This document shows, one piece after another, positions 208-44,880 of a DNA stretch of 63,736 nt; position 1 is the first letter of the stretch; every line of letters starts with the position of its first letter. Location: NCBI RefSeq assembly GCF_016433145.1, contig NC_058132.1, forward strand, positions 88,355,754 through 88,419,489, given 5' to 3'. Made by a program: the position numbers and the translations under genes. The notes beneath the pieces are model-generated. The model worked only from the letters and a program-made list of their open reading frames with translations, had not been told where the DNA came from and did not search any database. Origin of the DNA: Gracilinanus agilis. Taxonomy: Eukaryota.

Positions 208-1170
208 CTAATACCTTCTATCAGTGACTTTTTTTTGGAAGAGCATCTGGACCAATCCATGACGGATCTGCTTGGTCTTAATGCTATAGACAACTGGGTT
301 GACCACAGGGGGCACTAGGAGATAGACATTGGCTAGGAGGAGGCGGACAGCAGGAGCAGCATGTTTCACAAATCGATGCACCATGGCCACTCCAATCATA
401 GGCACATAGTATACAAGCACAGCACAGATGTGTGACACACATGTGTTGAGAGCCTTCCGCCTACCTTCCCCAGAGGCAATGCCTAGCACTGTATGGAGGA
501 TCAGCCCATAGGAGATGACGATGAGCAAGGAGTCCAATCCAAAGGTGGAGGTGACAATACACAGCCCCAGAATGCTATTGGGACGTGTGTTCCCGCAGGG
601 TAGCTGAATCAGGTCTGAATGAAGGCAGTAAGAGTGGGAGAGGGTGTTGTGACCACAGAAGGGCAGGCGCCTCAGGAGGAATGGCAGTGGAAACATGATC
701 ACCACACTCTTTAACCCAATAGCGATGCCTGTGCGGGCAATGCGGGGCAGAGTTAAGATGGTTGTATAGCGCAGTGGGCTGTAGATGGTTATGAAACGAT
801 CCACAGACATGGCCAGCAAGACAGCTGACTCCATGATGGAGAAGGAGTGGATGGAGAACATCTGGAACAAGCAGGCATCAAAATTGATCTCATTGGAGTT
901 AAAGAGAAAGATGCTTATCACAGTAGGTAGAGTGGAGGCTGAGACCCCAAGCTCAGAGAAAGCTAACATAGCCAGGAACAAGTACATGGGTTGGTGAAGA
1001 GGAGGACTGCCATGGATCACTAGTAGGATCAGGCTATTGCCAACAAGGGCCACGAGGTACATGGAGCAAAAGGGGATGGCGAGCCAAGGGTAGATAGCCT
1101 CCAGCCCAGGGAGGCCTGTGAGGAGGAAGGTCTCTGGTGTGAACTGGCTAATGTTGAATGTCATCCCCAT
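208..1170 (-). CDS. Class I olfactory receptor, family 51 (OR51J/OR51K-like clade), intact
   Basis: 7TM OR motifs [31 protein letters not shown] and PPVVNPVVYSIKT. The ORF track starts at 1224, but the likely start is Met at 1170 or 1164 (MGMTFNISQF, with N-glycosylation sequon NIS), just after a predicted acceptor ttctcAG at 1181-1182. Segments such as TSTFGLDSLLIVISYGLILHTVLGIA match recalled OR51J1/OR51K sequences. Confidence 0.95.
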   Translation of the reverse strand: MGMTFNISQFTPETFLLTGLPGLEAIYPWLAIPFCSMYLVALVGNSLILLVIHGSPPLHQPMYLFLAMLAFSELGVSASTLPTVISIFLFNSNEINFDACLFQMFSIHSFSIMESAVLLAMSVDRFITIYSPLRYTTILTLPRIARTGIAIGLKSVVIMFPLPFLLRRLPFCGHNTLSHSYCLHSDLIQLPCGNTRPNSILGLCIVTSTFGLDSLLIVISYGLILHTVLGIASGEGRRKALNTCVSHICAVLVYYVPMIGVAMVHRFVKHAAPAVRLLLANVYLLVPPVVNPVVYSIKTKQIRHGLVQMLFQKKVTDRRY

Positions 1171-2102
1171 TCCCAAGTCTCTGAGAAGGTGTTCAGGAAG
1201 GAACCTAGGATGTGATAGACACATTTAGGCATTATACATGCAACTTATGAAGCTGTCAATTGAATAGAAGTAGTAGAGCTTAACTTCATGGCCCAACCAG
1301 CTGAGCTATCCCAAGAAGTGGATAAATAAATCAAAGAGCACACTTAAGTTAATTGTTTTTCTCTATTCATTTTTTACAAAACATACATATGACTCAATCT
1401 TTAATATTTGTATTTGTTTAATGAATTTAAGGTAAAGTATAATTCAGTATAATATTTAGAGAAATATATAAATACTTGAGTAGATTATATCATTTTCCTT
1501 AGTAAACTTTAAAATTTATCAATCATTTTCAGTCTGGTCTTGGTTTTCTCAATCACGGCTAACTATATAACTCATCCTGATTCATGATGCTTAGATCTCA
1601 AAGACAGTGCCAGTGAAATGCAAACAGAGCTTACCAAGCTAAGAAAACATAGGGTCAGAGGGAGACAAATTCACAGGCTTAGATAACCATTTTTCTCCCC
1701 CTCTAAGGAACATCTTCAGTGCATTCTCTTCACACCTTCCAGCTTTTCTTTTTAGATCTTCCTCCTTACCCTTTCATTAACCTTAAAATTTCTCCCCAGG
1801 CTCTCTACCTATAAATACAGGTATCTTTATAGATGGATAACTACTTAGTTTCCTTTGTCATCCTTTATTTTATTTCATACATTGAAAAGACTACTCTGAG
1901 AAGGGGTCAATAGATTTTATCAGATTGCCAAAAGATGTTTATGACAGAAACAGAAAAGTGTATTGACTGAAATTCTCCAGAGGTAGTATTTCTTAATTTT
2001 AAAACAATTTTTTAGTTGGTCAGTCAAGAAATCCTAATCTGGTCAAGTGATTCTCTTGGAGGCAGTAGGAGTGGGAGAGGGTGTTGTGCCTGACCCCCAT
2101 TC

Positions 2103-13542: not shown

Positions 13543-14481
13543 ATGTCCCTGATCAATGCCACCCATTTCCGACCTTCTTTCTACCTTATTGGTTTCCCTG
13601 GTTTGGAGGCCATTCAACACTGGATCCTTATCCCCTTCTGCCTTATGTATCTGGTGGCCATCTTGGGCAACTGCTTCATCCTGTTCATCATTAAGACAAA
13701 CTCTCATCTCCATACCCCCATGTACTACCTCCTCTCACTGTTGGCCTTCAATGACCTTGGCCTCTCGGTGTCCACACTGCCCACCACATTGGTCACTTTC
13801 TGGTTTGGGACCCAGGACATCTATTTTGGCACCTGTCAGTTCCAGATGTTTTGTATCCACTCCTTCTCCTTCATGGAGTCTGCTGTACTCCTTGTTATGT
13901 CATTCGACCGTTTTGTGGCCATCTGTTGCCCATTGCGGTACTCAGTCATTGTCACAGGCCAGAGAGTGACTTGGACTGGCCTTGCCATCATCCTTAGGGG
14001 TCCTGTAGCCCTGCTCCCAATTGTTCTCCTCCTCCAAGCCTTTCCGTATTGTGGACGTCGGACTCTCTCACACTCTTTCTGTCTGCACCAGGATGTGATC
14101 CGCCTAGCCTGTGCAGATACCACCTTTAATAATCTGTATGGATTGAGCCTGGTGGTATTCACTGTGGTTCTTGATCTGGTCTTCATTGCCCTGTCCTATG
14201 CACTCATTCTTCACGCTGTGATGGGTCTGGCCTCCCGAGAAGAACAGCTACGAGCCTTTCAGACATGTACCTCACATCTCACTGCTGTATTGGTCTTCTT
14301 TGTGCCCATGGTGGGTCTGTCCTTAGTACACCGCTTCGGAAAGCATGCTTCACCTGTTGTCCACCTCCTCATGGCTAACATCTACCTGTTTGTGCCTCCC
14401 ATGCTCAACCCCATCATCTACAGCATCAAAACCAAGGAGATTCGCCGGGCAATTGTTAAACTTATGGTGCGACTAAAATAG
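13543..14481 (+). CDS. OR51M1: Class I olfactory receptor OR51M1 orthologue, intact (312 aa)
   Basis: Diagnostic segments [42 protein letters not shown] and RAFQTC closely match recalled human OR51M1. Predicted acceptor ttttcttttcAG ends at 13497. Confidence 0.93.
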
Positions 14482-16860: not shown

Positions 16861-17058
16861 ATGATTAAATGTTATTTTTATGACTAAATGTTCCACATGT
16901 AAGATAAACAAGAATCAGTCAAAATTCAGGAGCAGAGCCCAAGACCTTCAGATGCCCAAGAATAGTGTAAATTAAAAGACATCTAAAATCTCTGCCTCTT
17001 AGTGGCTAGCTATTGGGACTGTATTATCCTTACTAGGCATGTAGCTGTTTAGTGTGTT

Positions 17059-17531
17059 CTCTTCCTTCCTTNNNNNNNNNNNNNNNNNNNNNNNNNNNNN
17101 NNNNNNNNNNNNNNNNNNNNNNNNNNNNNNNNNNNNNNNNNNNNNNNNNNNNNNNNNNNNNNNNNNNNNNNNNNNNNNNNNNNNNNNNNNNNNNNNNNNN
17201 NNNNNNNNNNNNNNNNNNNNNNNNNNNNNNNNNNNNNNNNNNNNNNNNNNNNNNNNNNNNNNNNNNNNNNNNNNNNNNNNNNNNNNNNNNNNNNNNNNNN
17301 NNNNNNNNNNNNNNNNNNNNNNNNNNNNNNNNNNNNNNNNNNNNNNNNNNNNNNNNNNNNNNNNNNNNNNNNNNNNNNNNNNNNNNNNNNNNNNNNNNNN
17401 NNNNNNNNNNNNNNNNNNNNNNNNNNNNNNNNNNNNNNNNCCTTCCTTCCTTCCTTCCTTCCTTCCTTCCTCCCTCCCTCCCTCCCTTCCTTCCTTCCTT
17501 CCTTCCTCCCTTCCTTCCTTCCTTCCTTCCT
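17059..17531. repeat. (CCTT)n polypyrimidine repeat spanning an assembly gap
   Basis: CCTT units on both sides of Ns 17072-17440. Confidence 0.9.
17072..17440. other. Assembly gap
   Basis: Run of N. Confidence 1.
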
Positions 17532-17559
17532 TGTTGAAAGGCCTCCATTCAACAGAAGA

Positions 17560-17995
17560 TTATTAAAGGCTAGGCAATTGGGTTTAAGTGACTTGCCCCA
17601 AAAATGTCTGAGATTGGATTTGAACCCAGGACCTCTTATCTCTTGGCCTTGCTCTCTAGCCACTGAGTTAATCTAGCTGCCCCTAGTTATATATTTTTTA
17701 TCAACAAATTTCTTAAATGCTGCTTCTGAGCCAGGGTCTGTGCTAGGAATTGGGGATAAAAAGACAGAAATGAAAATCTCTCTTCTCAAGGAATTTACAG
17801 TCTATAGGAGAGATAACCTGTATGGTAGAAGTGGCAAACAAAAGATCTAAGTGACTGTTGTGACCCACAGCATTTCTGGCTCAATGGATTGAGAGTCAGA
17901 CCTGGAGATGGTTTGTCCTGGGTTCAAATCTGGCCTCAGATACTTCCTAGCTGTGTGATGCTGGGCAATACACAGTATTGATTCCAAGGTAAGTG
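17560..17995. mobile_element. Two head-to-head degenerate marsupial SINEs (minus 17560-17682, plus about 17870-17995)
   Basis: CORE-SINE motifs (GATTTGAACCCAGG on one strand, GGGTTCAAATCTGGCCTCAGA on the other). Confidence 0.7.
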
Positions 17996-21149: not shown

Positions 21150-22255
21150 TGCTAATTTTTTTAAATTTAAAATTTATTTGCATATTACATTAAAATTCCC
21201 AGATATCTTCCTCCCTTTTCCCCTCCCCTCTCCACACTAAAGAAAGCATCATTAGACAAAAAGATATATGTATATATAAAACTATGTCTTGCTCATTTTT
21301 ATTTATCAATTCTTTCTCTGGAGGTAGACATATAGAAGATATTTTTGAAATTATATTTCTGTTGTATATAATGTTCTCTTGGTTCAGCTTGTTTTGCTGC
21401 AATAATTTCNNNNNNNNNNNNNNNNNNNNNNNNNNNNNNNNNNNNNNNNNNNNNNNNNNNNNNNNNNNNNNNNNNNNNNNNNNNNNNNNNNNNNNNNNNN
21501 NNNNNNNNNNNNNNNNNNNNNNNNNNNNNNNNNNNNNNNNNNNNNNNNNNNNCTTATGGTAGAATTACATTGCAAACAGCTTGTCTAGCTATTCCCCATT
21601 TGATGGATATCCCTTCAATTTCCAGTCCTTTGCCATTACAGAAAGAATTGTCATAACTATTTTAGAACATAGAGCTTCTTTTCCTTTCTCCCTGATCACT
21701 TTAGAAAACAAACCTACTATTGGTATTCTTGTGTATAAAAAATTTTAAAACTTTTGGGCATAATTCCAAATTGCTCTCCAAAATGGTTGAATTAGTTCAC
21801 AGTTCAACCAATAGTGTATTAGTGTCCCCACGTTTTCATTTTGTCCTTTTATCCCTTTAGTCAATCTGATAGTTGTGAGATGATGACTCAGAGTTGTTTT
21901 GATTTTCATTTCTCTTATCAACAACAATTTAGAGGATTTTTTCATATGGTTAAAAATAGCTTTGATTTCTTCATTAAAAACGTCTGATCATATCTTTTGA
22001 CCATTTATTAACTGGGGAATGACTCATATTTTTATAAATTTAACAAAATTCTCTCCATATTTTACATGAGAGAGACCTCCGAGAAACTATAAAATTTCCT
22101 CTTAATTTTCTACTTTCCTTCCAATCTTAGCTATAAAACTTCTTGATTTAATGTAGTCAAAATTATACATTTTATACCCCTCAACGATTTCTGTCTCTTG
22201 TTTATCCATAAAATCTTCTCCTACCCATAAATCTGATATGTAATATGTTCAATTA
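21150..22255 (-). mobile_element. L1 3' fragment (ORF2 C-terminus plus 3' UTR), spanning a gap
   Basis: ORF 21745-21945 reads SKLLLIREMKIKTTL...GTLIHYW...ELIQPFWRAIW, the L1 ORF2 C-terminus. Confidence 0.9.
21410..21552. other. Assembly gap
   Basis: Run of N. Confidence 1.
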
Positions 22256-22261
22256 CAATTT

Positions 22262-22892
22262 TATAGGAGAAACACACCCAAGTTTGTAGCAGGGTCTTGC
22301 CTCAAGAATAGGAGACTCAAATTCTATTCAGAGAAGTAAGAAAAATAATTTCTTATGAAGAAGAGGTTTATAGTGGTATAATAGCCTAGTAGCTGGAGAA
22401 ATAGTCTGGGGCTAATCAGATAGTCTTCGGGCTGATGGATTAACCCAGGGGCTAATAGAGTAGTCTCTCTGGAGCTGATGGAATAGCAGCTCTCCAGATA
22501 TGGAATGGCAGCTCCAGCTGTGGAATTGTAGTCCCCAGCCGATGGAATAGCAGCTCCAAAGCCCTGGAATTGATCGGATAGTCTTGGGGTTGATGGATTA
22601 GTAGCAACTCCATCTGTGTAGTAGTAATCCATCCTTTGGCATAGCAACTCAAGGTGTGGATCAGGGTTTGCATATTTATTAGGGTCTGAGAGCTTGTCAT
22701 CTCTCAGTCTAGGGAAGTCTTCACCTTTCCTGAAAACTCTGGAAAATAGGGATGGCCAAATTTGGGTGGAGGTGTGTTTGGGGGTTTGAAATAGAAGAAT
22801 AGGGAGCACATGCAGTTTGGGGGGATCCTTTTGGAATGCCAGAGTCCTTGGTGATCATGCCCAATGTTCTCCCATTGTCCACCTTGTCATCA
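22262..22892 (-). mobile_element. Probable solo LTR in the predicted intron of paralog A
   Basis: Minus-strand AATAAATATGC TATA-like box, internal short tandem repeats (GATGGAATAGCAGCTC x2) and a TATAAACCTC poly(A)-like site. It abuts an L1 fragment. TSD not resolved. Confidence 0.55.
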
Positions 22893-23181
22893 TTTTTCAA
22901 TGTGGGCTAAATAATTATGGGATCTCATTCGGTCATTAAAGGAAACTCCTTCATTTTATAGATGAGAAAACTAAGGTTTGGTGATTGACAAAGGATACAG
23001 AAAAGAAGGGTAAAATTGAGGGGGTGGGAATGGAGACTTTAAGTGAAGCCTGTTTCAAAAGCAATGATCACGGAGATTCAGCCCAGGCCAGAATAGTCAG
23101 AAGGTAAGTAAGAGAACATTGACCTCTTTTTTATTCTATTGACTACTCAATCCCTAATTATCCCAGGAAGAATTTCCAAGG

Positions 23182-24126
23182 ATGCCTAACCTGCCCAGGA
23201 CCAACTTCAGCTTCACCACCTTCTTGCTGACTGGTTTCCCAGGCCTGGAGTGGGCTCACTGCTGGATCTCCCTGCCCATCTTTGCAGGCTATCTAGTAGC
23301 TCTTCTGGGCAACATCACCATCCTGCACCTGGTCCGCACAGAGAACTCCCTGCATCAGCCCATGTACTACTTCCTGGCAATCCTAGCAGTGACAGACCTG
23401 GGTCTCTGCATGTCAACTCTGCCCACAGTGCTGGGCGTGCTGTGGTTTGATGCACGGACCATTGGGCTGGTGTCTTGCATCCTGCAGCAGCATTTCCTCC
23501 ACTCCTTCTCTTTCGTGGAATCTGCTGTGCTCTTTGCCATGTCCCTGGACCGCCTGGTGGCCATTCGCTTCCCACTGCGCTATGCCACAATCCTCTCTGG
23601 CCCCCGTGTGGCACTGGCTGGGGCAATACTGGGTCTGAGGAGTGCTGTTATCACAGCAGCCCCCTCAATCCGCTTGTTCACCTTCCGGTACTGTCACCCT
23701 GGAGCCCTCTCTCATGCCTATTGTGTACACCAAGACATGATCCACCTGGCCTGCTCTGATACCCACTTCAATAGCATCTATGGGCTGTGCCTCATCATGC
23801 TGGCCATGGGCTCTGATGTTCTCTTCATTCTGGTCTCCTATACCATTATTCTCCACACTGTACTCTCTATTGCCTCTGCCAGGGAGAGACTTAAAGCCCT
23901 CAACACATGTGTGTCCCACATCCTGGCTGTGTTGTGTTTCTATGTACCTGTGCTTGGCTTATCCATTGTTCACCGCTTTGGACGCCATGCTTCCCCTGTT
24001 GTGCATGTGCTTATGGGCACAGTTTCAGTGCTTTTCCCACCTTTGATGAATCCTGTGATCTATAGTGTCAAGACACATCAGATCCGTCGAGCCATCCTCA
24101 AGGTGGTCTCTTTGGGGAAACACTGA
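23182..24126 (+). CDS. Class I olfactory receptor, family 51, paralog A (314 aa), intact
   Basis: OR motifs [32 protein letters not shown] and [13 protein letters not shown]. Near-identical to 35673-36620. Possibly related to mouse Or51ai2 (recalled, unverified). Confidence 0.95.
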   Translation: MPNLPRTNFSFTTFLLTGFPGLEWAHCWISLPIFAGYLVALLGNITILHLVRTENSLHQPMYYFLAILAVTDLGLCMSTLPTVLGVLWFDARTIGLVSCILQQHFLHSFSFVESAVLFAMSLDRLVAIRFPLRYATILSGPRVALAGAILGLRSAVITAAPSIRLFTFRYCHPGALSHAYCVHQDMIHLACSDTHFNSIYGLCLIMLAMGSDVLFILVSYTIILHTVLSIASARERLKALNTCVSHILAVLCFYVPVLGLSIVHRFGRHASPVVHVLMGTVSVLFPPLMNPVIYSVKTHQIRRAILKVVSLGKH

Positions 24127-26099
24127 TGATGGGTTTGGGGCATGTTAGAAGCTATTTGGCGATATCCTACATTCAAATAGTGATTTATTTAATAATATTA
24201 AGTTTTAAACAGAAGATGATACACATGAAGACTTCTTAAGAACTTTTGAATTTAGAGTTCAACAGTTTCAATAGATCTGGACAAACATGACAAAAGCACA
24301 TGGTATGGTAGTGACTGAATGAGTGGAGGGGAGAGAGGGACAAAAGAAATATTGTGCTCTTAAAAGTATCTGCTCTATGATGTTGATTAGATATGAAGGA
24401 AAAATTGAAGGTGACTCTCAGAATTGAGGCTGGAAATCTTGAAGGTGCATAGTATCATCAACTGATGACAGGAAGCAAGGCAGCATTCTTTATTTATTTT
24501 TTTTTGTGTATGGGGAATAAAGGAAAACAATGAAATGTTTTATAAATATGGAAATTGAAACCATTATGGAATAAACAAATGAGAATGTCATTTAGGACAT
24601 TAGAATTGTGTATCAGCTTAGGAATAGTCTGTGGTAGAGATGGATATTTAGAATTTATTCACTTAGTCTTCATCAATAAGGTTACATAAGTGAGTAAAGT
24701 CAACAAGAGAAAGAACATAATGAGAGAGAAGAGAAAAAGGGCAAAGGGAGAGTCTTTAGTAAAATCCATCCTTAGAAACCACCAGAAAAGGGAAGACTTG
24801 GCACGTCCAGAATGGTCTGAGTTCTATGTTTCTCACAAACAGAAGTGGTCTGGTCTTCATTGTTAACACAGATTAGGCACCAGGTTCATCATCATCAGTG
24901 GATGGAAACAGATAAGTAATTGAAAGGCAAGTAAAATTTAAATTCCTCTTTAGAATTAGGAATTGTCCAAATTGGCTTCAACTAATTTATTTTGGTTCAA
25001 TAAAATTATATTCAGCAACAAATATGTAAGTACTTATATTATGCTAAGCCATGGAATCCATAGAATTCATAAAATTAGAGCTAGAAGAAATCTTAGAGGC
25101 CATTGATTACACCTTCATCATTTTACATATGACAAAAAATGAGGGACAGAGAAATTCAGTATTGTCCAGATTCATACATCTTATGAATGTCTAAGGTTAG
25201 TTTTTCTTTTTGACTTCAAGTTCAGTGCTCTATCCACTTTGCCAAATGAAACATTGTCTCTGCCCTCAAGTAGTTTATTTCTTGTTAGATTCAGTTTTAT
25301 TCATCAAGCATCTTTTTAGAAGGAAGAAAAGAAAAAAAGTATAGAAACATTTAACTACTGATTATATACTAAGCATTTTTAAAATATTATTTCATTTGTT
25401 CTTCACAACAACCCTTGGAGGGAGGGGATATTTTTATATCCATATTACATTTTACATCAGAGGTTAAATGATTTTGCCAAGATTATCCAACTGGTCTGAT
25501 GGCAGATTTGAATTCAGGTCTTTCTAATTCTCAATATGTTAGGAATTCTGGTAGGCACTAAAATTACAATAAAAATGAAGCAATTCCTTCCTTTAAAGAA
25601 CATGCATTTGACTCAAATGAAAAAATTCATACAAAGAAAAAATAAGTGCAAAATACATTATGAAAATATGAAACAAATTATAAATGCAAAATGAAATACA
25701 TGCAGAATAATTATAAAATAATTTTGAAGTGTACAATAACTGAGAAAGTCAAGAGATGCCTCTTATTAGAGGGGGCACTTAGTCTGGAGAGGAATTAAGG
25801 AAATAGGAGAGCATTTAACACGAGAGATTTCTGGTGCAAAAGCATAGAGGTAGGAGATCAATTCAGAAATACAGATTTAGAAGATCATTCTGTTTGAAAG
25901 CAGAAGTAAGCGAACTTGTTCTAGAAATGTCAGTTGTAGTTAGACTTTGAAGAACCTTAAATTCCAAATCTAAGAGTTAATATTTTATCTTTGTGGCAGT
26001 AGGAAATCCTAGAAGCTTCCTGAGCACACAAGGGCTTCTCTCTCTCTCTCTCTCTCCCTCCCTCCCCCTCTTTTCCTCTCTCTCCCCCTCTCTCTTCTG

Positions 26100-26660
26100 T
26101 CTCCCCACTCTAATTCATTATCCAATCAACTGTCAGTTGTCTTCCTAAAATATTGGATGACTGTCTCCTCTCCCTAGTCCATAAATTCCAGTGAAATCTT
26201 TTAACTTCCAGGTCTTGTAAAACCGTGCTTTTAAAAAACCTTTCAAAACCTTGCCCCTTTTAACTTTTCCAGTATTTTTATACCACACTCTTCATCACCT
26301 GTTCTAAAATCCATTGATGCTGGTTTTTCTTCTTTTCCTCTCACAAGGCACTCCATCTCCCAACTCCAAGCATTTTGATCAACTGTTCCCCTGTGCCTGG
26401 GAGTTTCTCTCACCGTATTTCTACTTCTCATTTTCCTTGGCTTCCTTAAAATCTCAATCAAAATCCTACCTTCTGCAAAATGCTTTTACTATTCTCTTCT
26501 TAACCTCAATGTCTTCCCTTTGAGAATACTCTCATTTTATCCTGCATGTATCTTGTTTGTACATTTTTGTTTTCATTCAATTGTGAGCTCCTTGAGAGCA
26601 GGAACTATCTTTTGCCTTTCTTGCTATGCTCAGTGCTTCACATAGTGCTTGGCACAGAGG
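26100..26660 (+). mobile_element. L2 fragment
   Basis: L2 3' end (GTGAGCTCCTTGAGAGCAGGAAC...CAGTGCTTCACATAGTGCTTGGCAC). Confidence 0.7.
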
Positions 26661-26974
26661 ATTGACATATGGACTCACAAAGTTTGTTGGGAGACTCAAA
26701 AGAGAAAATGTATTTGAAAGGTTATATAAATGTTAAAGTATTATGATAATGTTAATAATCATTACATTTTTATTTCCCTTCTCTGGACCTCAGACATCTT
26801 TCTCTAAAATTCAGAAGTTGGAGTAGTTGATTCCTAAAGTCTCTTTTACTTTAAAACCTAGAAATCATCTTGATCCACTGGGAGAAGGAGGTGGGGAGCA
26901 CTACCTCACAAGCCTGTGGCACCAGGGACTCCCTGTAGAATTACAGGAGTCTCCTAAGAGTCACTACTGAGCCT

Positions 26975-27153
26975 GAAGCTCTAGGGGCACTGTCTCCATA
27001 AAAGGAGTTGATATAAATATCTCAGTAGGAGAGGGAGGCCCACAGGCTGTCAGCCATTGTGGGGAAGGACCTTGGTATACTAGGAAGGCAGAGCAAAGGC
27101 CTGGTTGTGCAGATGTGGGCAGAAGAAGCCCAGCTGACAGAAAGCAGGTGAGT
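26975..27153 (+). promoter_or_regulatory. Predicted promoter and first exon of OR paralog B
   Basis: GATATAAATA (27010-27019) and donor CAG|GTGAGT (GT at 27148). The box-to-donor spacing of 138 nt is the same as in paralog A. Confidence 0.6.
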
Positions 27154-29244
27154 GAATATAGAGATGTACTCTTGGTGGGGAGCATAAGGGTTAGAGTGGA
27201 GTTCAGCCTAGCCAGAAAATAGTTTCTAATAGAAGAGAATCTTGGATTTTTAATGTTAGAGAAGATGAGGGGATATGGAAGAAAGAATTTTAAGAATCAA
27301 CAATAGCAATTTCTCACATTTTTTCAATGTTTTATTTTCCAAAGATCTTTATTATCTATCAATTTTTGAGATTATGTCTCCTTGCCCAGGCTGGAAGTAC
27401 AGAGAACTCTCACTGGCCCCACCGCACTACTGATTAGGTCAGAAGATTTCGCCAGCTCTATTTCAGACCTGGGTCAGTTCACTCCTTCTTAAGTAATCTA
27501 CTGGCCTCCTATCCACAGAGTTTACATATTTTGATAAAAATAGTGCAGAGGCAAAGAGGCTCATTTAATTATAATCCAATTTGGTCCAAATCTCCAGGAG
27601 ATTGAGGCACAAGAAAATGAAGGATTTGCCCAATGTCATCCAGTTTTTCAGTAATAGCCTGGAAATACAGTTTCAAACCCAGGTCTCCTGACTGTGCATC
27701 CAGTACTCTTTCCACTATTTTCAAATTCTACAGAGTGACTTCCAAGAATAGCACCTAAGAGAAGAGAATGGATCTTCATCAGGAGAAATATAGGACGTTT
27801 TAAAAAGCTTGGCAATTGGGTGAGACATTGATGGTAGTGATGGAAGGTGACTACAGGGTTTCCATTCCTGGGGATCTTGAGAGATTAAACAGATTCACAT
27901 CTCACCAAAAAGGAAAGATCTTCTAAAAAGACAGGGTACTGACTGGGTGAAAGGACCTCAGGGAGATACCATTGAAGGGCCAGTATTTTCCATAGCTTTC
28001 CACTTTACTAAGTCTCATCCACCCAGTCTTTCTTCTCTCTATTGTCCAGCTTTCCCATCCTCTTGACCTTCCATTTCTCTGCACCTGAGTATTCATTCCC
28101 TTCCCTCTGTACCCCAGTCAGTTTCTTTGTCTCTCTGTCTCTCTTTGTTTCTCTTTCTCTTATCTTTCTATCTCCTCTCTTTGTCTTTTATCTCTGTTTT
28201 TCTGTCCCACCCCACTCACCCACAGTCTGCTCTGTCTCTTAGTATTTTCTTCTCTGACTCATTTTTCTCAAATCTCTCAATATGAATTATTTTCTTCTTG
28301 TTCTTGAATCTCTTTCTTAGCAAGTGTGAAAGCAATCTAGTCAAAGGAGATGCCATGCTTTAAAATTAAATGGAAAAGGAGGAGAAAGAGGGGAAGAAGG
28401 CTCTCAGATACAGAAATTAAACCAGATCAACAGAGAACAGGAGACATTGCTAAGAGTTTTTCTTTTCTTCCTGTTTTCTTTTTTTTTCATCACAGAACCA
28501 TTTGGTAGTCCAATGAAAACCATCCTTTTCAGAATAATATTTTGAAATGCCTAAAACATGTAGAATTAAAAAGAAAAACAATTATATTGATTGCAGTTGT
28601 CAAAATATTAACAAAAACCCAAGTTCTTTATGCCCAGGTTAGAAACCCTGGGCTTAGAGAGAAATGTAGCACTGGAGATTCCTAGTAATTCACAAGAGGT
28701 GATGATAGAGAATTAATATTTATGGGATCAGATTTTTATATACCAATGCATGGAGAATGGCAAAGAAACACAGTTAACTAGATATCTTGCCAAGAACAGG
28801 GATATTCAACTTCATAGCTAGTACTGAGAATTGTTGGTATGTGAATATTAGTAGGAAAGTGGCTGGAATCATAATTTCTTAGACAACCCTTACTTGTGGA
28901 AATTCTTTCTGCCGAAGCAGGTCAACAATCTCCTCTTCAATCCCTAGTCTTAGAGAGCTGTCTACCATCCTAAGAAGACTAAGGATTTTTCTAGGATCCT
29001 ATAATCAGTATGTAACAGAGGTTGGACTTCACACTAACTTATCTTGGCTTTAGAAAAAAGCTCTCTATCCATTGTGATCATAAGTTCATAATATCATTTC
29101 TGATTAGGGAGCTAATGGAAGGCTATTCTGCCTTGAAATGGAACAATTCAGAAGCTTAAAAAGGTGGGTGTCATCATCAATCAGGAAGATATTTACCTAT
29201 CTGAGAATATATATGCATGAAGTGAGATGTAGACATAAGATCAT

Positions 29245-29426
29245 TTTTTTAAAACCCTTGTACTTCGGTGTATTGTCTCATAGGTGGAAGATTGGTAAGG
29301 GTGGGCAATGGGGGTCAAGTGACCTGCCCAGGGTCACACAGCTGGGAAGTGGCTGAGGCCGGGTTTGAACCTAGGACTTCCTGTCTCTAGGCCTGACTCT
29401 CACTCCACTGAGCTACCCAGCTGCCC
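29245..29426 (-). mobile_element. Young SINE-1_MD
   Basis: Nearly identical to 46594-46774, with 16-bp TSD GACATAAGATCATTTT (29232-29247 and 29429-29444). Confidence 0.95.
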
Positions 29427-29764
29427 CTGACATAAGATCATTTTAATGAGGATCTGCAGACTCACCAAGGATACTGGGAATGAGGTAAAACTATACTTCT
29501 GGTGCTCTGTTACCCAGAAGAATGGGATAACGTGTAACTGTTGGAGTTCACCAAGCTGATGAGAAAGTAGAATATACTCATGCCTTGGCACTTCAATGGC
29601 CATCTGGACATCTGCTAAAGAGAGAATGGGCATAATAAAAAAATGGATTTCGGAACAGACAACATGAGTTTGGCTCCTGGCTTTCCTTCTCTCTAGTAAA
29701 GGAGGAGTCACTGATCTTCTCAGGGACTCAGTTTATTGATTGGTACATTAAGAATGTTGACCTA

Positions 29765-29894
29765 TTCAAATCCGGCCTCAGACACTTCCCAGCTGTGTGA
29801 TCCTGGGCAAGTCACTTGACCCCCACTGCCCACCCTTACCACTCTTCCACCAAGCAGCCAATACACAGAAGTTAAGGGTTTAATAATAAAAAAA
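29765..29894 (+). mobile_element. 5'-truncated SINE-1_MD
   Basis: 15-bp TSD AAGAATGTTGACCTA (29750-29764 and 29895-29909) and an A-tail. Confidence 0.9.
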
Positions 29895-30289
29895 AAGAAT
29901 GTTGACCTAGATAACTATGGGCTCTTAGACTGATAGCTGGAAGGGTAATTAAAGGCAGTCCCTTCTTTTAACAGATGAGGAAATCAAGATTAACTGACAT
30001 AGCAATAGACATATAAGCAATGAATGTTAGTTGCAGGATCTGAATGAACACCATTCTTCTTGACTCCTGATGATTATCCTATACCATATGTGTCTCAATA
30101 TTGATTGGTCTTATCATCCTATAAGATAATCAAGTTCACTCTGGACTGAAAGAGAAGTAGCTAATAAATTCCTGCCTTTTCCTTTCTGTTTGAGAAAAAT
30201 TATGAACCTACTTTCAACCTAAAAGAAGGAACTGTTTGTTGCAGTGTAAATAATAAGCATTTTGGGAGGCAATGGAAATTTGATCTTTT

Positions 30290-31250
30290 TTTGAGATTAA
30301 AAATTTTTAATTTTAATATCAAATTTTTACATGTTTCCAAAGCTACATAATCCAAATTGTCTCCCTACCTTTTCCTCTCACTCCTCCTGGAGCTAACAAG
30401 CAATTCAATCTGGGTTATACATGTATTATCTTGCAAAACTTGTTTCTATATTATTCATTTTTGTAAGTGAATAATCTTATAAAACCAAAATCTCAAAACA
30501 TATGCCCAAATAAATAAGTGATAAGCTATATGCTTCTATCTGCATTTTTACTCCAATAGTTCTTTCTCTGGAGGTGTATAGAATTATTCTTCATAAGTCC
30601 CTCAGAATTGTCCTGGGTCATTGTTTTGCTGTTAGCAACAAGGTCCATCACATTTGATCAGTCCACAATATTGCTGTTACTGTGTATAATGTTCTCCTGG
30701 TTCTGCTTATTTCACTCCACATGAGTTCATGTAGGTCTTTCCACCTTTTTCTGAAGTCATCCTGTTCATCATTTCTTATGGCACAATAGTATTCCATCAA
30801 CATCATATACCACAGTTTGTTCATCCATCCCCAATTAAGGGAGATCTTTTAGTTTCTTATCCTTTGCCATGACAAAAAGAGCAGCTATAAATATTTTTGT
30901 ACAAACATGCTCTTTCCCATTTTTTAATCTCTTTGGGATACAGGCCTAGTAGTGGTATTAATGGATCAAAGGGTATGCAGTCTTTAATAACCCTTTAGAC
31001 ATATTTACAAACTGCTCCCCAGAACAGTTGAATCAGTTCACAACTCCACCAGCAATGCATTAGTGTCTCAATTTTGCCACATCTCCTCCAGAATTTATCA
31101 TTTTCCTTTACTGTCATATTGGCTAATCTGATAGATGTGTGGTGGAACCTCAGAGTTGTTTTAATTTTATTTCTTTAATCAAGAGGAATTTAGAACATTT
31201 TTTCATAAGATTATCAATAACTGATTTCTTCATCTGAAAACTGAGCATCA
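30290..31250 (-). mobile_element. L1 3' fragment
   Basis: Reverse poly-T start and marsupial L1 3' UTR/ORF2 sequence homologous to 21150-22255. Confidence 0.85.
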
Positions 31251-31499
31251 ATTTAATCTTAAGAATTCCTGATCAGTGGAGAGATAGATATTAGGTATAA
31301 TTCTATATGTTCCTTATATTGAAGAATTATGACTTCAAAATGTTCAGAGAAAAGAGGACAGCTTAAGTATTGAGATCTTTTCTGAATTTAGTACATGATG
31401 AGTCTGAGAAATTTAGAATCATATAAAAGTCACCATCCTCATGAACCTCTTATTGTTTCAGAGGCAGCTGCAGAAAGCTACTTCCTATCATGGGAACAG

Positions 31500-32060
31500 T
31501 GCTCAGAGGTTATTGAACTTGCTTAACAGACTACAAGAAAAATCAATTAAGGAGAGATAGAAAACTGTCAAGTACAAATTTTCAGTACTACAATTTGATT
31601 CCAATAAGAAATACAAGTGACCAATGGAGATATCTTGGGAAGTCTGTGACCTGCTTAGATTACATAAAAGGATTTTATAGTCTTTAAAAAATTTATAATC
31701 TTTCAAAAGATAGAAGGATAGCATTTTTCATTATGAGTCCTTTGGGACTATAATCTCAAAAAAAATAAAATAAAATTGAATTAAGATGGAAAGAAGAACA
31801 GGTAACGAGTGATGAACAGAAAAGAGTGGCAAGAACCTAAGAGAATGGTGTTCAAAATTCTAAAGCCCATTAAGATCTGAATCTGGGTACAAATACTGAA
31901 ATATAACCAAAAGATCTTTTGATTCGATATTGGAGACAAAAGAAAGACAAGAGAGGACAGAGAAAGAGCCCCTGCTGGGGATGGATGGTACAATGATGTT
32001 AGCCAATAGAGAAAACACTAAAGAGCTCCTCTTTTGTTTTAGATATGTTCTTCCTCCCCC
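31500..32060 (+). mobile_element. L3/CR1 ORF2 fragment
   Basis: CCCCTGCTGGGGATGGATGGTACAATG...GAGCTCCTC...TTCTTCTC matches the CR1 ORF2 linker region. Confidence 0.55.
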
Positions 32061-32173
32061 CTGTTTAGGAGAATCATATTCAGAATAAAAAGGATAACAC
32101 CCAAATAGTTAATATGAAATTTAGGACTTTTCAAATGTAATAGCAACCATAATAAAAAAAAAAAACAATACTC

Positions 32174-32356
32174 GGGAAGGCAGGTGGCTCAGTTGATAGA
32201 GAACCAGGTCTGGAGATGGAAAGCCCTGGGTTCAAAAGTGGCTTCAGATATTTCCTAGTTGTGTGACCCTGGGAAAGTCAGTTTACCCAATTGACTACCC
32301 CTAATCACCCTTCTAATTAGTATTGATTCTAAGACACAAAGTAAGGGTTTAAGAAA
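32174..32356 (+). mobile_element. Marsupial CORE SINE
   Basis: Head GGCAGGTGGCTCAGTTGATAGAG and tail GTATTGATTCTAAGAC...GTAAGGGTTTAA. Confidence 0.8.
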
Positions 32357-32899
32357 AACACAGCAAAACTTCATTTATTTAGAAATGCCTGACTTCATAG
32401 CATAAATTTCCTCTGTTGATACAGACTGCCCTCCTTTCACAACTTAGTGGAGAGACTTTGAAATCTGATATCTTATCTATCAGTAGTAGCCAAACTGGTG
32501 ATGAAGTCTTTCTGAGCTGAGAAAAGCCTGTCCTTTGATAATAAATATAGAATCTATCCCTAGATACAGACATGAAGTAGAGACTCAACTACACTGACAT
32601 ACACAGACATCCCTCATAAACGAGGGAGTGCTTAGTGGAGGATAGGTCTGATGAGGCATTAGGGCAGAACTTTCAACATCGATTAGCACTTTATGATTTA
32701 TGCCTGGCTTTATCAAAAGTTCACAAAATGAATTTTGCTTAATATGCTCCATTTTACAATTAAGAAAACTGAAGCTCAGAGAAATTTAGTGACTTTCTTA
32801 CAGTCTAATACGTGTCAGAGCATGGATTTGAATCCAGAACTGCTAATTCTCTTGTCTTCCAACTTCAAGGGGAGTACTCTTACACTCTACTTCACTGGA

Positions 32900-33950
32900 G
32901 CAGAATAAGTAAGAGTTAAAAAAACATTTTGCTAAGAAAGGAAGGAAGGAATTTGAATTATGTTATGTCATGGAACCAAAGGAAGGAAAGATCTTAAATA
33001 AGAAGTGGATTGTTAAAAATGTAAATGTCAACAAATTTAGAGAGTTCCAGGAGAAAAAGAACTGAGAAAAGTCTTTGAATGACAAATAGGTCAATCTTAT
33101 TCTCTCTATTCCATGTTGGTGCCTTTAGAGAAAACATTTTTAGTAGAGGTTTGGGATCAAAAATCCATTTTTAATTTGTTAGTGCAAGAAAGAAGAAATG
33201 GGATAGTAGTTAAAGGAACATCTGGCTTAAGCAAGGCGTAAGTAAAATATTTTTCAGCTCAGGAGCTCAGCTTCATGGCTGAGGGGAGGGAACCATTGAA
33301 GAAGAGAGAATAGAGATATTAATAAGAGAAAGCACAATGGAAGCAGACTATCTCAGGGATCTAGTAGGGGATAGGAATCTAGTATATTAAAGGAGATATT
33401 AAATTTAGAGAGAAAGAGAGTTTCCTACCAAGGAGAGAATAAAATTTGGCAGTCAATTACTCAAGCATTTATGAAGTGCTTACTATTTCCAATGCACTGT
33501 ATACTGCAGACACAGAGATACAAAATCATAGTCCTTTCCTTCAAAGAGAGCACATAGGTGAGAAAATATGTAAATAATTTGGTACATACAAGATTTATAC
33601 AGTATAAATGGAAAGAATTGTAAAGAATGCTATAGTGGCAGTTGAGAGAACAAGGAAAATTCTTTTAATAAAGTAATATTTGAACTGATTCTTGAAGGAA
33701 GCCTAGGAAACTCAGAGGTGGAAGTGTGAAACAATAGACATGAAGTGTGGTGTGTGAAGAATAACTATTAGAGAAGTATTTCTGGATCATAGTGTGTGTA
33801 GGGGATGAAAGAGCTGAATGGTGAGGGCCTGGTTATAAAGAACATTATAGGCCAAATCTAAGACTTTATATTCCACACTGGAGGTAATAAGGAACAGAGA
33901 GATTTACTAGGCTGGGACTGACTTCAACAGACTTACACATTAGGAAAATC
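32900..33950 (-). mobile_element. Degenerate L2 fragments
   Basis: Purine-rich reverse L2 sequence including the CAATTACTCAAGCATTTATGAAGTGCTTACTA tail. Confidence 0.6.
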
Positions 33951-34284
33951 ATTTTAGCAACTAAGATGGGGATGAATTGGAGTTCAGAAGGATGTGAGTG
34001 GACAGGAATAGGTTGAGGAACGTGAAAGGGTGGGGACAATTTTCTGGAAAAGACGGAGAGGAAAAGAACACAGGTGAATATAGAAGTGTCAGTCTTTGCA
34101 AAAGAATGGCCACATATTTCTGTGAGAATAGATGATGGAGAAAATAGTAAGAAAAAATGGCTGAAAAGGAATGGAAAAGAGGGAGCTCTCTATGAATGGC
34201 CTGCATTTTTTTTTTCTGGAAATATATAATAAAGTCTTCAGCTGTTAGGGTAAGGGGGGAGATACATAAGAGTTGATGTATTGA

Positions 34285-34751
34285 TGTGAAACTTTAATTA
34301 CTTAGTGGTATAAGAGTTAAATTTAAAACACACAGGTCCTTAGAATTTTATAAAGTTTATTTGAATTACTTGGGATAGGTGAAAGATCAGAATCAGGTAA
34401 AAAAATTAAAAGTAAAATAGCCTAATCTAAACTACCATGTGGGTGGTCTCAGCTTGGCCACCCTAGCAGCTCCCCCAGTGCGGTCACCCAAGATAGAGAG
34501 CAAACACTTCCTGGATCACTTCTTTTTATATCTGGATCTATTTCAGAATCATGTCTGGATCAGGTATGTAGATCACCATCCTATGGCCCACACTTGGTGA
34601 TGCAGGTGACGCAAACTCATGCACATAGATGTATACTCAAGTGACCTAATTTACTCAATGATTTCTCTCACCCCATCCTGGCTTCTGGATCAAATATTTG
34701 GCAGGAGCTGCAGAAAAATGTGTGATCTCAGAAAAGTAAAATTCCTTCACA
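34285..34751 (-). mobile_element. Probable solo LTR in the predicted intron of paralog B
   Basis: TGTGAA...TTCACA termini. Minus-strand GATATAAAAAG TATA followed by AATAAAC. TSD not resolved. Confidence 0.6.
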
Positions 34752-35672
34752 TAATGGCATAACTGGCGATAACAGACTAGTATTCATCCCTGAAATTTGA
34801 TAGAAGTATATTTAGGTTGAAATGCCTTCTGCTTGTAAATAAACATTTTTTTGAAAAAAAAGTATAAATGTGTTTTTTTTTGGACACTTCCAAAACTTCC
34901 CAACATGGCTTCAGATACACATTTCATCTTCTCATTAAAAAAAAAAGTTGCCATCTGCTCATTTTGGGGGGAGTAGTAGGGGGAATCATTTAATTTTTAT
35001 GGTAAAAATGACCTTAGTTAATTTGTTTTACAAATAATACAATTGAGGCCAAAAGCTATAAAGTAACTTACCTAAGAAGAAACATTGGTTGGTAGCAAAT
35101 AAGTGAAAGAATTCATTGTAGATGATTTTAGTATGAATGCTTATTGGCAAAGGGCTAGGTATATATGGGGCTTTAAGGAATTTTTATTATTATTATTACT
35201 GTTGACTCCTTAGGAGCATAGGGCCGCAACCATCTCACGCCAGCGGACTTAAGGAATTACATGAAAGAAATATTTTAGGGAGTCACTTAGAGTATAATGG
35301 GAGGCAAAGGTATTGGTTTCTGAGAAGTGGGAATTCCCAGTGGTCAAAGATAAATGGATTTAATTGGAAAGACCAATTTTATCACAGTTCTACATTTTTC
35401 TCTGGCAGTAATATAGTCTGGGTATCAGAAGATATCCATAGTGCAGTTTACCTAGTTTTAGGGCTTGACAAGGGACAGAAAAGCATGGCATAATGGGTGA
35501 GAAGGATGGAAATTTTGGGTGAAGGCTGTCTCAAAAACAATGATCATGGAGATTCAGCCCAGGCCAGAATAATCAGAAGGTAAGTGATATTCCACAGTAA
35601 GAAAGAGAGATTGATCTTTTTTTGTTCTATTGACTTCTCAATCCCTAATTATCCCAGGAAGAATTTCCAAGG

Positions 35673-36620
35673 ATGCCTAACCTGCCCAGGACCAACTTCA
35701 GCTTCACCACCTTCTTGCTGACTGGTTTCCCAGGCTTGGAATGGGCTCACTGCTGGATCTCCCTGCCCATCTTTGCAGGCTATCTAGTAGCTCTTCTGGG
35801 CAACATCACCATCCTGCACCTGGTCCGCACAGAGAACTCCCTGCATCAGCCCATGTACTACTTCCTGGCAATCCTAGCAGTGACAGACCTGGGTCTCTGC
35901 ATGTCAACTCTGCCCACAGTGCTGGGCGTGCTGTGGTTTGATGCACGGACCATTGGGCTGGTGTCTTGCATCCTGCAGCAGCATTTCCTCCACTCCTTCT
36001 CTTTCATGGAATCTGCTGTGCTCTTTGCCATGTCCCTGGACCGCCTGGTGGCCATTCGCTTCCCACTGCGCTATGCCACAATCCTCTCTGGCCCCCGTGT
36101 GGCACTGGCTGGGGCAATACTGGGTCTGAGGAGTGCTGCTATTACAGCAGCCCCCTCTATCCACTTATTCACTTTCCAGTACTGCCGCCCTGGAGCCCTC
36201 TCTCATGCTTACTGCTTACATCAGGACATGATCCGCCTGGCCTGCTCTGACACACGCTTCAACAGCATCTATGGACTGTGCATTATCATGTTGGCCATGG
36301 GCTCTGATGTTCTCTTCATTCTGGTCTCCTATACCATTATTCTCCACACTGTACTCTCTATTGCCTCTGCCAGGGAGAGACTTAAAGCCCTCAACACATG
36401 TGTGTCCCACATCCTGGCTGTGTTGTGTTTCTATGTACCTGTGCTCGGCTTATCCATTGTTCACCGCTTTGGACGCCATGCTTCCCCTGTTGTGCATGTA
36501 CTTATGGGCACGGTTTCAGTACTTTTCCCACCTTTGATGAATCCTGTGATCTATAGTGTCAAGACACATCAGATCCGTCGAGCCATCCTCAAGGTGGTCT
36601 CTTTGGGAAAGCTCCGGTGA
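35673..36620 (+). CDS. Class I olfactory receptor, family 51, paralog B (315 aa), intact
   Basis: Same motifs as paralog A. About 9 internal amino-acid differences plus a different C-terminal end (GKLR vs GKH). Confidence 0.95.
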   Translation: MPNLPRTNFSFTTFLLTGFPGLEWAHCWISLPIFAGYLVALLGNITILHLVRTENSLHQPMYYFLAILAVTDLGLCMSTLPTVLGVLWFDARTIGLVSCILQQHFLHSFSFMESAVLFAMSLDRLVAIRFPLRYATILSGPRVALAGAILGLRSAAITAAPSIHLFTFQYCRPGALSHAYCLHQDMIRLACSDTRFNSIYGLCIIMLAMGSDVLFILVSYTIILHTVLSIASARERLKALNTCVSHILAVLCFYVPVLGLSIVHRFGRHASPVVHVLMGTVSVLFPPLMNPVIYSVKTHQIRRAILKVVSLGKLR

Positions 36621-37129: not shown

Positions 37130-37405
37130 NNNNNNNNNNNNNNNNNNNNNNNNNNNNNNNNNNNNNNNNNNNNNNNNNNNNNNNNNNNNNNNNNNNNNNN
37201 NNNNNNNNNNNNNNNNNNNNNNNNNNNNNNNNNNNNNNNNNNNNNNNNNNNNNNNNNNNNNNNNNNNNNNNNNNNNNNNNNNNNNNNNNNNNNNNNNNNN
37301 NNNNNNNNNNNNNNNNNNNNNNNNNNNNNNNNNNNNNNNNNNNNNNNNNNNNNNNNNNNNNNNNNNNNNNNNNNNNNNNNNNNNNNNNNNNNNNNNNNNN
37401 NNNNN
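37130..37405. other. Assembly gap
   Basis: Run of N. Confidence 1.
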
Positions 37406-43938: not shown

Positions 43939-44880
43939 TCACACTCCAGCTTTGTTATGAGAAAACAAGCGGAGAAAACCAGTCTGTATTTGCTTAGTCT
44001 TGACACTATAGATAACAGGATTCATTAACGGAGGGAAAAGGAAGTAGACGTAGCTCATTGTGATATGGACCACATGTGGCACATGCTTTCCAAACCGATG
44101 GATGAACGTCAGGCCAACCACAGTGACATAGAAGACAAGGATGCAGCAGATGTGGGACACACAGGTATTGAGGGCCTTGGCTCGTTCCTCCCCAGAGGCA
44201 ATGCCCATGACTGTCTTGAGTATCAGAACATAAGAGAAGACAATAATCAAGAAGTCCATTAGAACCAGGGCAAACACAACTACTACAGGATACAGGCGAT
44301 TGAAGGTGATGTTGGCACAAGCCAACTTGATGACATCCTGGTGGAGGCAGAAGGCATGGGAGAGGATATGGGAATGGCAGTAAGGGAACCAATGAAGCCT
44401 CACAATTATGGGCATAATAGAGAAAGCAGCTCTCATCAGCACTCCAATGCCAATCTTCATCACCTGGGAATTGGTGAGGATAGTGGTATATCTGAGTGGG
44501 TTGCGAATGGCAACGAAACGGTCATAGGCCATGGCGAGCAAGACACCGGATTCCACGATAGAGAGAGTGTGGATGAAATAGGCCTGGGAGAAGCATATGC
44601 CATGGCCAATCTTCCTCTGATCTAGCCATAAGACCCCCAGAACAGTGGGCATTGTGGTAAGAGTTACGCCAAGGTCTGTGGCTGCCAGCATGGCCAGGAA
44701 ATAGTACATGGGTTCATGGAGGCTGTGGTCATTCTTGATGAGGAAGAGGAGACCACTATTGCCAAGAATAACAGAAAGATACACTACAAAGAAGGGGATG
44801 GAGATCCAGCGGTGAGCTGCCTCCAAGCCTGGGAAGCCAGTCAGCAAGAAGGGAGCTGTGCTGCTGCCGTTGGGCCACAT
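43939..44880 (-). CDS. OR51B6: Class I olfactory receptor OR51B6-like, intact (313 aa)
   Basis: MWPN...[14 protein letters not shown] start typical of OR51B. Segments [41 protein letters not shown] and [16 protein letters not shown] match recalled human OR51B6. Confidence 0.9.

Follow-up and report, generated by a model that had tools for sequence, protein, structure and literature searches.

Two tandem OR51-type olfactory receptor genes of Gracilinanus agilis, with a probably ancient divergence island between stretches very probably kept alike by gene conversion

We have analyzed a stretch of 63,736 nucleotides from the marsupial Gracilinanus agilis (contig NC_058132.1, positions 88,355,754 to 88,419,489; this whole stretch is the window in what follows). 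It contains two tandem olfactory receptor (OR) genes, copy A and copy B, each an intact open reading frame (ORF) in a single exon (Table 1). Their coding sequences (CDSs) form a mosaic, almost identical at both sides of an internal segment of 156 nt, the island, in which they differ strongly. Both translations match the Pfam 7tm_4 profile (348 bits for copy A and 354 bits for copy B, with a cut-off of 27), and the solved structures nearest to the pair are consOR51 (E 3.6e-115) and human OR51E2 (E 4.6e-91). The relatives of A and B are named OR51L1-like in the sources, mouse Or51ai2 is 83% identical, and the closest named relatives of the two proteins (entries P0130 and P0125) are two proteins of Monodelphis domestica, 95-96% identical. 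The arginine R6.59 that binds carboxylates in class I receptors is present in both copies. Specifically, the residues that hold the carboxylate in OR51E2 (R262, S258, Q181 and H104) correspond to R265, S261, Q184 and H107 in A and B, the OR51E2 number being that of the window protein minus 3. By these features, A and B are predicted to function as class I ORs of the OR51 family.

We compared the two copies base by base over the CDS. Here, as in all the comparisons below, the data are assembled sequence. An earlier note on this DNA had counted 3, about 24 and 4 differing nucleotides in codons 1-155, 156-207 and 208 to about 312, and our figures for codons 1-155, 156-207 and 208-311 are 3, 24 and 4. 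In the 5' part (nt 1-465) the copies differ at nt 64, 69 and 334 only, and in the 3' part (nt 622-933) at nt 774, 828, 840 and 849 (4/312 nt), while the 24 differences among the 156 nt of the island (nt 466-621) are spread within nt 467-619. The final 10 nt of the CDS, where the similarity stops, hold five further differences. All nine internal amino acid differences listed in that note (V112M, V156A, R164H, R169Q, H172R, V182L, H188R, H195R and L204I) were exact, and its description of the island differences as in many cases synonymous translates into 16 of 24, the remaining eight being nonsynonymous. The label that it gave to the island, from transmembrane helix (TM) 4 through the second extracellular loop (ECL2) to TM5, also holds in OR51E2 numbering with the TM ranges of the OR51E2 paper. 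The island covers the top of TM4, the entire ECL2 and the start of TM5, and V112M is located in TM3.

The clustering of the differences is extreme. In 20,000 permutations of the 31 differences over 933 nt, the maximum number falling in 156 nt was 16, versus the 24 observed, and the binomial tail of the island was 1.8e-13. The synonymous divergence (dS) between A and B was 0.016 in the 5' part and 0.051 in the 3' part versus 0.69 in the island, a value that uses only 35 synonymous sites and carries a wide error. The nonsynonymous divergence (dN) of the island was 0.07, giving a dN/dS of 0.10. Since the synonymous sites have diverged too, the island appears to have had a different history and not merely a faster protein evolution. 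We also looked for a signature of GC-biased conversion in the GC content of third codon positions, which was 0.63-0.64 in the pair versus 0.60-0.61 in the neighbouring ORs and 0.53 in the 3' tract, and found these values uninformative.

The similarity between A and B detected by BLAST is confined to positions 22974-24119 versus 35454-36610, beginning about 200 bp before the ATG and reaching codon 312, and nothing else is collinear between them in the 12.5 kb between and around the pair. It ends sharply at nt ~935, and downstream of there A and B are unalignable in the four species compared. The outer flanks of A cannot be aligned to those of B either, whereas the flanks of either copy can be aligned to those of the same copy in Monodelphis, Sarcophilus, Antechinus and Sminthopsis. 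In these four species, judged where the fetched flanks extended to the neighbours, the gene order is kept: an OR of 312 amino acids, copy A, 12-14 kb, copy B and an OR of 313 amino acids on the minus strand. The 312-residue OR lies upstream of copy A in Monodelphis at the same place as in the window, and the 313-residue one was found downstream of copy B in Sarcophilus, wombat, Monodelphis and Antechinus. By position, the orthologs of copy A are P0128 in Monodelphis, P0132 in Antechinus and P0004 in Sarcophilus, and those of copy B are P0124 in Monodelphis, P0127 in Antechinus, P0002 in Sarcophilus and P0003 in wombat. The window species, Monodelphis and Antechinus also have in common the GKH* ending of copy A. 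Where a single gene was annotated, the downstream flanks place the one of bilby at the A position and the one of wombat at the B position. Copy-specific orthologous flanks together with a conserved order indicate an ancient tandem duplicate and not a recent copy, and on this comparative evidence A and B were already separate genes when American and Australian marsupials diverged, roughly 70-80 million years ago.

Table 1. Location in the window of the two receptor genes, of the segments of their mosaic and of the other OR genes.
Feature	Position	Strand	Description
Copy A	23182..24126	+	Intact single-exon ORF, 314 amino acids, OR51L1-like, ends GKH*
Copy B	35673..36620	+	Intact single-exon ORF, 315 amino acids, ends GKLR*
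5' homogenised tract, copy A	22974..23646	+	Equivalent to 35454-36137 in B; ~200 bp upstream plus codons 1-155
Divergence island, copy A	23647..23802	+	Codons 156-207; 24/156 nt differ from B
Divergence island, copy B	36138..36293	+	7/156 nt differ from Monodelphis B, 24 from the A of the window
Island core, copy A	23718..23733	+	CDS nt 537-552; codon 182 GTA (Val)
Island core, copy B	36209..36224	+	Codon 182 TTA (Leu)
3' homogenised tract, copy A	23803..24117	+	Equivalent to 36294-36608 in B; codons 208-312
Upstream neighbour OR gene	13543..14481	+	ORF, 312 amino acids; synteny anchor
Downstream neighbour OR gene	43939..44880	-	ORF, 313 amino acids; synteny anchor
Further OR gene	208-1224	-	ORF

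We built maximum-likelihood trees from the 777 coding nt outside the island and, separately, from the 156 nt of the island. With the 777 nt, the A and B copies of one species formed a clade in the window species (support 96/93), Monodelphis (99/97), Antechinus (97/94) and Sminthopsis (96/92), and forcing the A of the window to group with Monodelphis A was rejected (log-likelihood cost 63, approximately unbiased test p-AU 4.6e-42). The island tree put the A of the window with Monodelphis A (support 95/94) and rejected a clade of the A and B of the window (p-AU 0.036). The earlier note had proposed this very comparison, with flanks grouping by species and island by orthology, and the pair behaves as it had anticipated.

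The individual sites tell the same. Among four-sequence patterns of the window species and Monodelphis, the 22 sites that group the copies by species are all at nt 6-411 or 633-858. The nine that group them by copy are nt 501, 540, 543, 544, 549 and 552 plus the terminal 941, 943 and 945, and the crossed pattern was supported by no site in this comparison. With Sarcophilus, the copy-grouping sites were nt 513, 537, 540, 543, 544 and 610, all within the island. In the flanking parts, the A versus B dS of 0.016-0.051 compares with 0.10-0.18 between the window species and Monodelphis and 0.31-0.58 between the window species and Sarcophilus, so that the island value for A versus B equals or exceeds the flank divergence from Sarcophilus. 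In the core of the island (nt 537-552, V182L included), Monodelphis and Sarcophilus carry the copy-specific bases of the window species. Specifically, at nt 537, 540, 543, 544, 549 and 552 the A-type base of the window also occurs in the copy A of Monodelphis, of Sarcophilus or of both, and the B-type core bases are common to copy B of Monodelphis and Sarcophilus and to wombat, and to bilby at most of these sites. As an outgroup, mouse showed a mixed state at the synonymous core sites, which are not polarised by it, and a leucine at residue 182.

A similar mosaic is found in other marsupials. In the 5' part, the island and the 3' part, respectively, A and B differ at 8, 9 and 3 positions in Monodelphis, at 4, 12 and 6 in Sarcophilus and at 10, 8 and 5 in Antechinus. 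In Sminthopsis there are only six differences in all over ~935 nt, with none in the island. The edges of the island vary: in the window it spans nt 467-619, in Monodelphis 501-573, in Sarcophilus 486-544 together with 610, and in Antechinus 537-573 together with 467 and 610. The part that differs in all four island-bearing species is nt 537/540-544 alone, where codon 182 (Val in A, Leu in B) lies. A difference of the type L204I or L204V is found in three of the four.

Copy A is damaged in two of these genomes. In Sarcophilus (region L002:10137-10143) it lacks 7 nt, CDS nt 137-143, that are present in all the other copies, which produces a frameshift. The corresponding protein is flagged as LOW QUALITY by NCBI, and the Ensembl model of an older assembly (P0136) splices around the same region. 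By its sequence, copy A of Sarcophilus has probably become a pseudogene, one in which exchange with copy B would be continuing. In Sminthopsis, codon 303 of copy A (L010:10001-10950) is a stop and there is a gap of 2 nt near nt 925, and the complete homogenisation of the pair coincides with this onset of decay. Six species have one annotated copy each, all with L182, and the A-position gene of bilby has a B-type core. Separately, a region of wombat (L004:11815-12056) was considered as a relic of copy A and rejected, because it is an incomplete, frameshifted copy of B type that covers CDS nt ~511-755, a small local duplication about 870 bp downstream of the B-position gene. One more Monodelphis sequence, P0122, a UniRef model from an older assembly, ends in GKLR like B and has V156 and H172 like the A of the window, and lacks residues 182-184. 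Its states hint that the Monodelphis island may be polymorphic or may differ between assemblies.

We consider that interlocus gene conversion between A and B, sparing an ancient island and acting on a duplication older than the marsupial crown, is very probably what produced these patterns. A tandem pair of class I ORs would have been duplicated before the American-Australian split, and repeated non-reciprocal copying between the two loci would keep about 1.1 kb near-identical within each species. The conversion would act as two tracts flanking the island, one from about -200 to nt ~466 and another from nt ~620 to ~935. The 156-nt island would be the part of the original A/B divergence that was never overwritten, plus later changes specific to copy A. 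Of its 24 differences, 10-11 recur in the matching copies of Monodelphis, Sarcophilus or Antechinus, and this sharing implies that they predate the splits of these species. Another 4-5 are specific to the copy B of the window, and one or two are ambiguous. The concerted evolution advanced in the earlier note is thus borne out as to a scaffold homogenised by conversion around an old island, with flanks grouping by species and island by copy. Its second half, selection preserving two specificity cassettes, is plausible but does not follow from the data: the island dN/dS is 0.10, none of the listed OR51E2 contacts is changed, the island has been erased in Sminthopsis, copy A is damaged in two dasyurids, and a neutral barrier to conversion due to mismatches would fit just as well.

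Several observations weigh against this history. Seven of the 24 island differences are unique to the A of the window, where ~3 would be expected to have accumulated after the divergence from Monodelphis (Poisson P 0.04). The island may thus be in part of recent origin and no relic, although some of these states may instead be old ones erased in the other lineages. In the whole-island tree the Australian species group by species, and the old signal is present there only at 3-6 core sites. Finally, in Antechinus the core is swapped between positions, something that simple one-way conversion does not give. In the two Antechinus genes (L007 for A, L008 for B), the A-type bases 537C, 543T, 544G and 549C are found at the B position and the B-type ones at the A position, with nt 540 unswapped. 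An exchange that looks reciprocal, a patchy repair of heteroduplex or a swap made in the assembly could account for it.

Homogeneous neutral conversion cannot give recently renewed tracts beside a stretch left untouched since the marsupial crown, so something must lower conversion in the island. One mechanism would be a self-reinforcing barrier, in which dense mismatches block heteroduplex formation and the unconverted patch would stay so and keep diverging, with its edges slowly eroded. We infer, as a slightly better than even proposition, that such a divergence-dependent barrier explains the sparing of the island without selection. In theoretical models attributed to Walsh 1987 and to Teshima and Innan 2004, conversion is reportedly suppressed in a diverged segment while the identical neighbours are still homogenised, producing sharp mosaics without selection.

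Selection is the alternative that survives best, and the two are not mutually exclusive. It would remove haplotypes homogenised at tuning residues, V182L (ECL2 position 45.51) and perhaps L204I (position 5.42), leaving what Teshima and Innan called a 'peak of divergence', and we give it somewhat less than an even chance. The only stretch that differs in all four island-bearing species (nt 537/540-544) is the one with the V182L codon, although four random intervals, as independently eroded islands would be, share a common point with P about 0.23. Residue 182 immediately follows the conserved ECL2 cysteine and precedes by two positions Q184, which corresponds to Q181 of OR51E2, a residue that hydrogen-bonds the ligand. 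In OR52cs and in class II ORs, position 45.51 takes part in contacts linked to activation, and 5.42, variable as L204I or L204V in three of the four species, adjoins the contact residue 5.43. However, none of the eight island replacements is at the listed OR51E2 contact residues for the ligand (propionate), the V/L and L/I swaps are conservative, five of the eight are G/A changes in CpG context that exchange R with H or Q, and the low dN/dS of the island also argues against selection for difference.

Observations from the other species fall on both sides. The islands of Monodelphis and Antechinus, with only 9 and 8 differences, would be a weak physical barrier and still persist, and Antechinus retains both variants despite the swap between genes. 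On the other hand, copy A is broken in two dasyurids, and the frameshifted one of Sarcophilus has kept its A-type island. The Sminthopsis pair bears on both sides: the erasure of its island speaks against selection, and the premature stop and 2-nt gap of its copy A, where the island is gone, speak for it. The six species with a single annotated copy, all L182, and the B-type core at the A position of bilby speak against a maintained pair of variants. The review literature treats peaks of divergence as a signature of selection (PMC3924837). A more specific proposal, that selection has kept the pocket-rim variants V182 and L182 (with or without L204 and I204) since before the radiation of the marsupial crown against continuous conversion, is at this stage tentative, and we would put it on the doubtful side. 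If true, one or two residues would be a naturally isolated minimal determinant of odorant tuning or activation.

The other explanations fare much worse. The island could be no relic at all and have arisen by a local burst of mutation or by positive selection after a complete homogenisation. The surplus of changes private to copy A, with several at CpG sites, goes in this direction. Nevertheless, most of the island differences are synonymous (16/24) with a dN/dS of 0.10, the core differences recur from species to species in the corresponding copies, and the island is at the same place in four species, all of which makes such a burst very improbable. Still less credit can be given to a donor elsewhere, that is, to recent duplicates, or a recent full homogenisation, that later received the island by conversion from a third and more distant paralog. 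The terminal branch of the copy A island is indeed long (0.11 substitutions per site), and seven differences are unique to this island. Against this, the 10-11 differences shared with Monodelphis, Sarcophilus or Antechinus are older than the species. Moreover, in a donor search that took in the window and annotated proteins, leaving aside unannotated pseudogenes elsewhere in the genome, there was no third close copy in the window, where the next-best OR matches are 65-78% identical, and no marsupial protein at 68-93% identity among 5.8 billion proteins, hence no annotated donor candidate.

Least probable of all, to the point of being nearly negligible, is an assembly artefact in which two more divergent paralogs would have been collapsed or cross-polished into the near-identical stretches: there are runs of N near both genes (21410-21552 and 37130-37405), but both copies are intact ORFs at the expected syntenic positions, 77% of the words sampled from 22700-24500 occur in one sequencing run (X15), which may be the source sample, so that this is weak support, and the same mosaic, with species-specific substitutions common to both copies, in four other independently assembled marsupial genomes makes an artefact in the window unlikely.

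Some features of the locus can be added. The window has three runs of N, at 17033-17663 (369 nt, flanked by a GGAAGGAAGG-type simple repeat), 21410-21552 (143 nt) and 37130-37405 (276 nt), the third starting 510 nt downstream of copy B. Upstream of both ATGs (23090-23165 in A and 35570-35655 in B) there is a conserved stretch that ends in CAGAAG/GTAAGT and is followed by a short diverged patch with a 15-nt indel and then by a T-rich run, and in both copies a CCCAG/GAAG lies 17 nt 5' of the ATG. This layout looks like a putative 5' untranslated exon, a very short intron and a splice acceptor, within the homogenised block.

The same pair appears to have been homogenised independently, and at the same place, in at least five marsupial lineages, with one short stretch older than those lineages. 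The pair is a well-controlled natural case of concerted evolution over a long time, and a compact system for asking whether islands of divergence are held by selection or by mismatch rejection. With nine residues of difference, eight of them around ECL2, the two receptors are also suited to probing positions 45.51 and 5.42 in the tuning of class I ORs. There is a practical side as well, as trees of the whole CDS would misdate the A/B duplication as recent and species-specific.

Gene conversion in OR clusters has been known since Sharon et al. (1999) described it in the human chromosome 17 cluster (as cited in PMC1995454). Conversion between neighbouring OR genes gave there, as here, mosaics or homogenised coding regions. 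Those cases are primate class II ORs over short time spans, whereas the marsupial pair is class I. In the open-access literature we found no report in which an OR pair had undergone parallel homogenisation throughout a mammalian infraclass and kept one unconverted island in common. Islands of divergence under conversion have been described in the human RHD/RHCE genes (Innan, 2003, referenced in PMC3924837) and in the GOT1 paralogs of Tigriopus (PMC3728101). They resemble our pair in having low divergence over most of the unit and a local divergent segment that is a candidate target of selection. Their duplications are much younger, whereas in the marsupial pair the orthology of the island across species can be demonstrated directly.

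The closest parallel is provided by the long-wave and middle-wave (LW/MW) opsins of primates, with a peak of divergence at exon 5 amid introns homogenised by conversion (Teshima and Innan, 2008, via PMC3924837). Both systems are tandem paralogs of G-protein-coupled receptors at most tens of kb apart, the paralogs within a species are closer than the orthologs in the converted parts, and a short stretch that groups by orthology holds residues of the tuning region, spectral in the opsins and for ligands in the ORs. The peak of the opsins is an exon between homogenised introns and that of the ORs lies within a single coding exon, and two tuning substitutions are functionally proven in the opsins, whereas the persistent difference in the OR pair is a conservative V/L swap that would be a candidate for such an effect. 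The OR pair is roughly twice as old as the LW/MW opsin pair. The process itself is known, and what this case contributes is a single OR pair that has been homogenised in parallel in the marsupials around a common island at ECL2.

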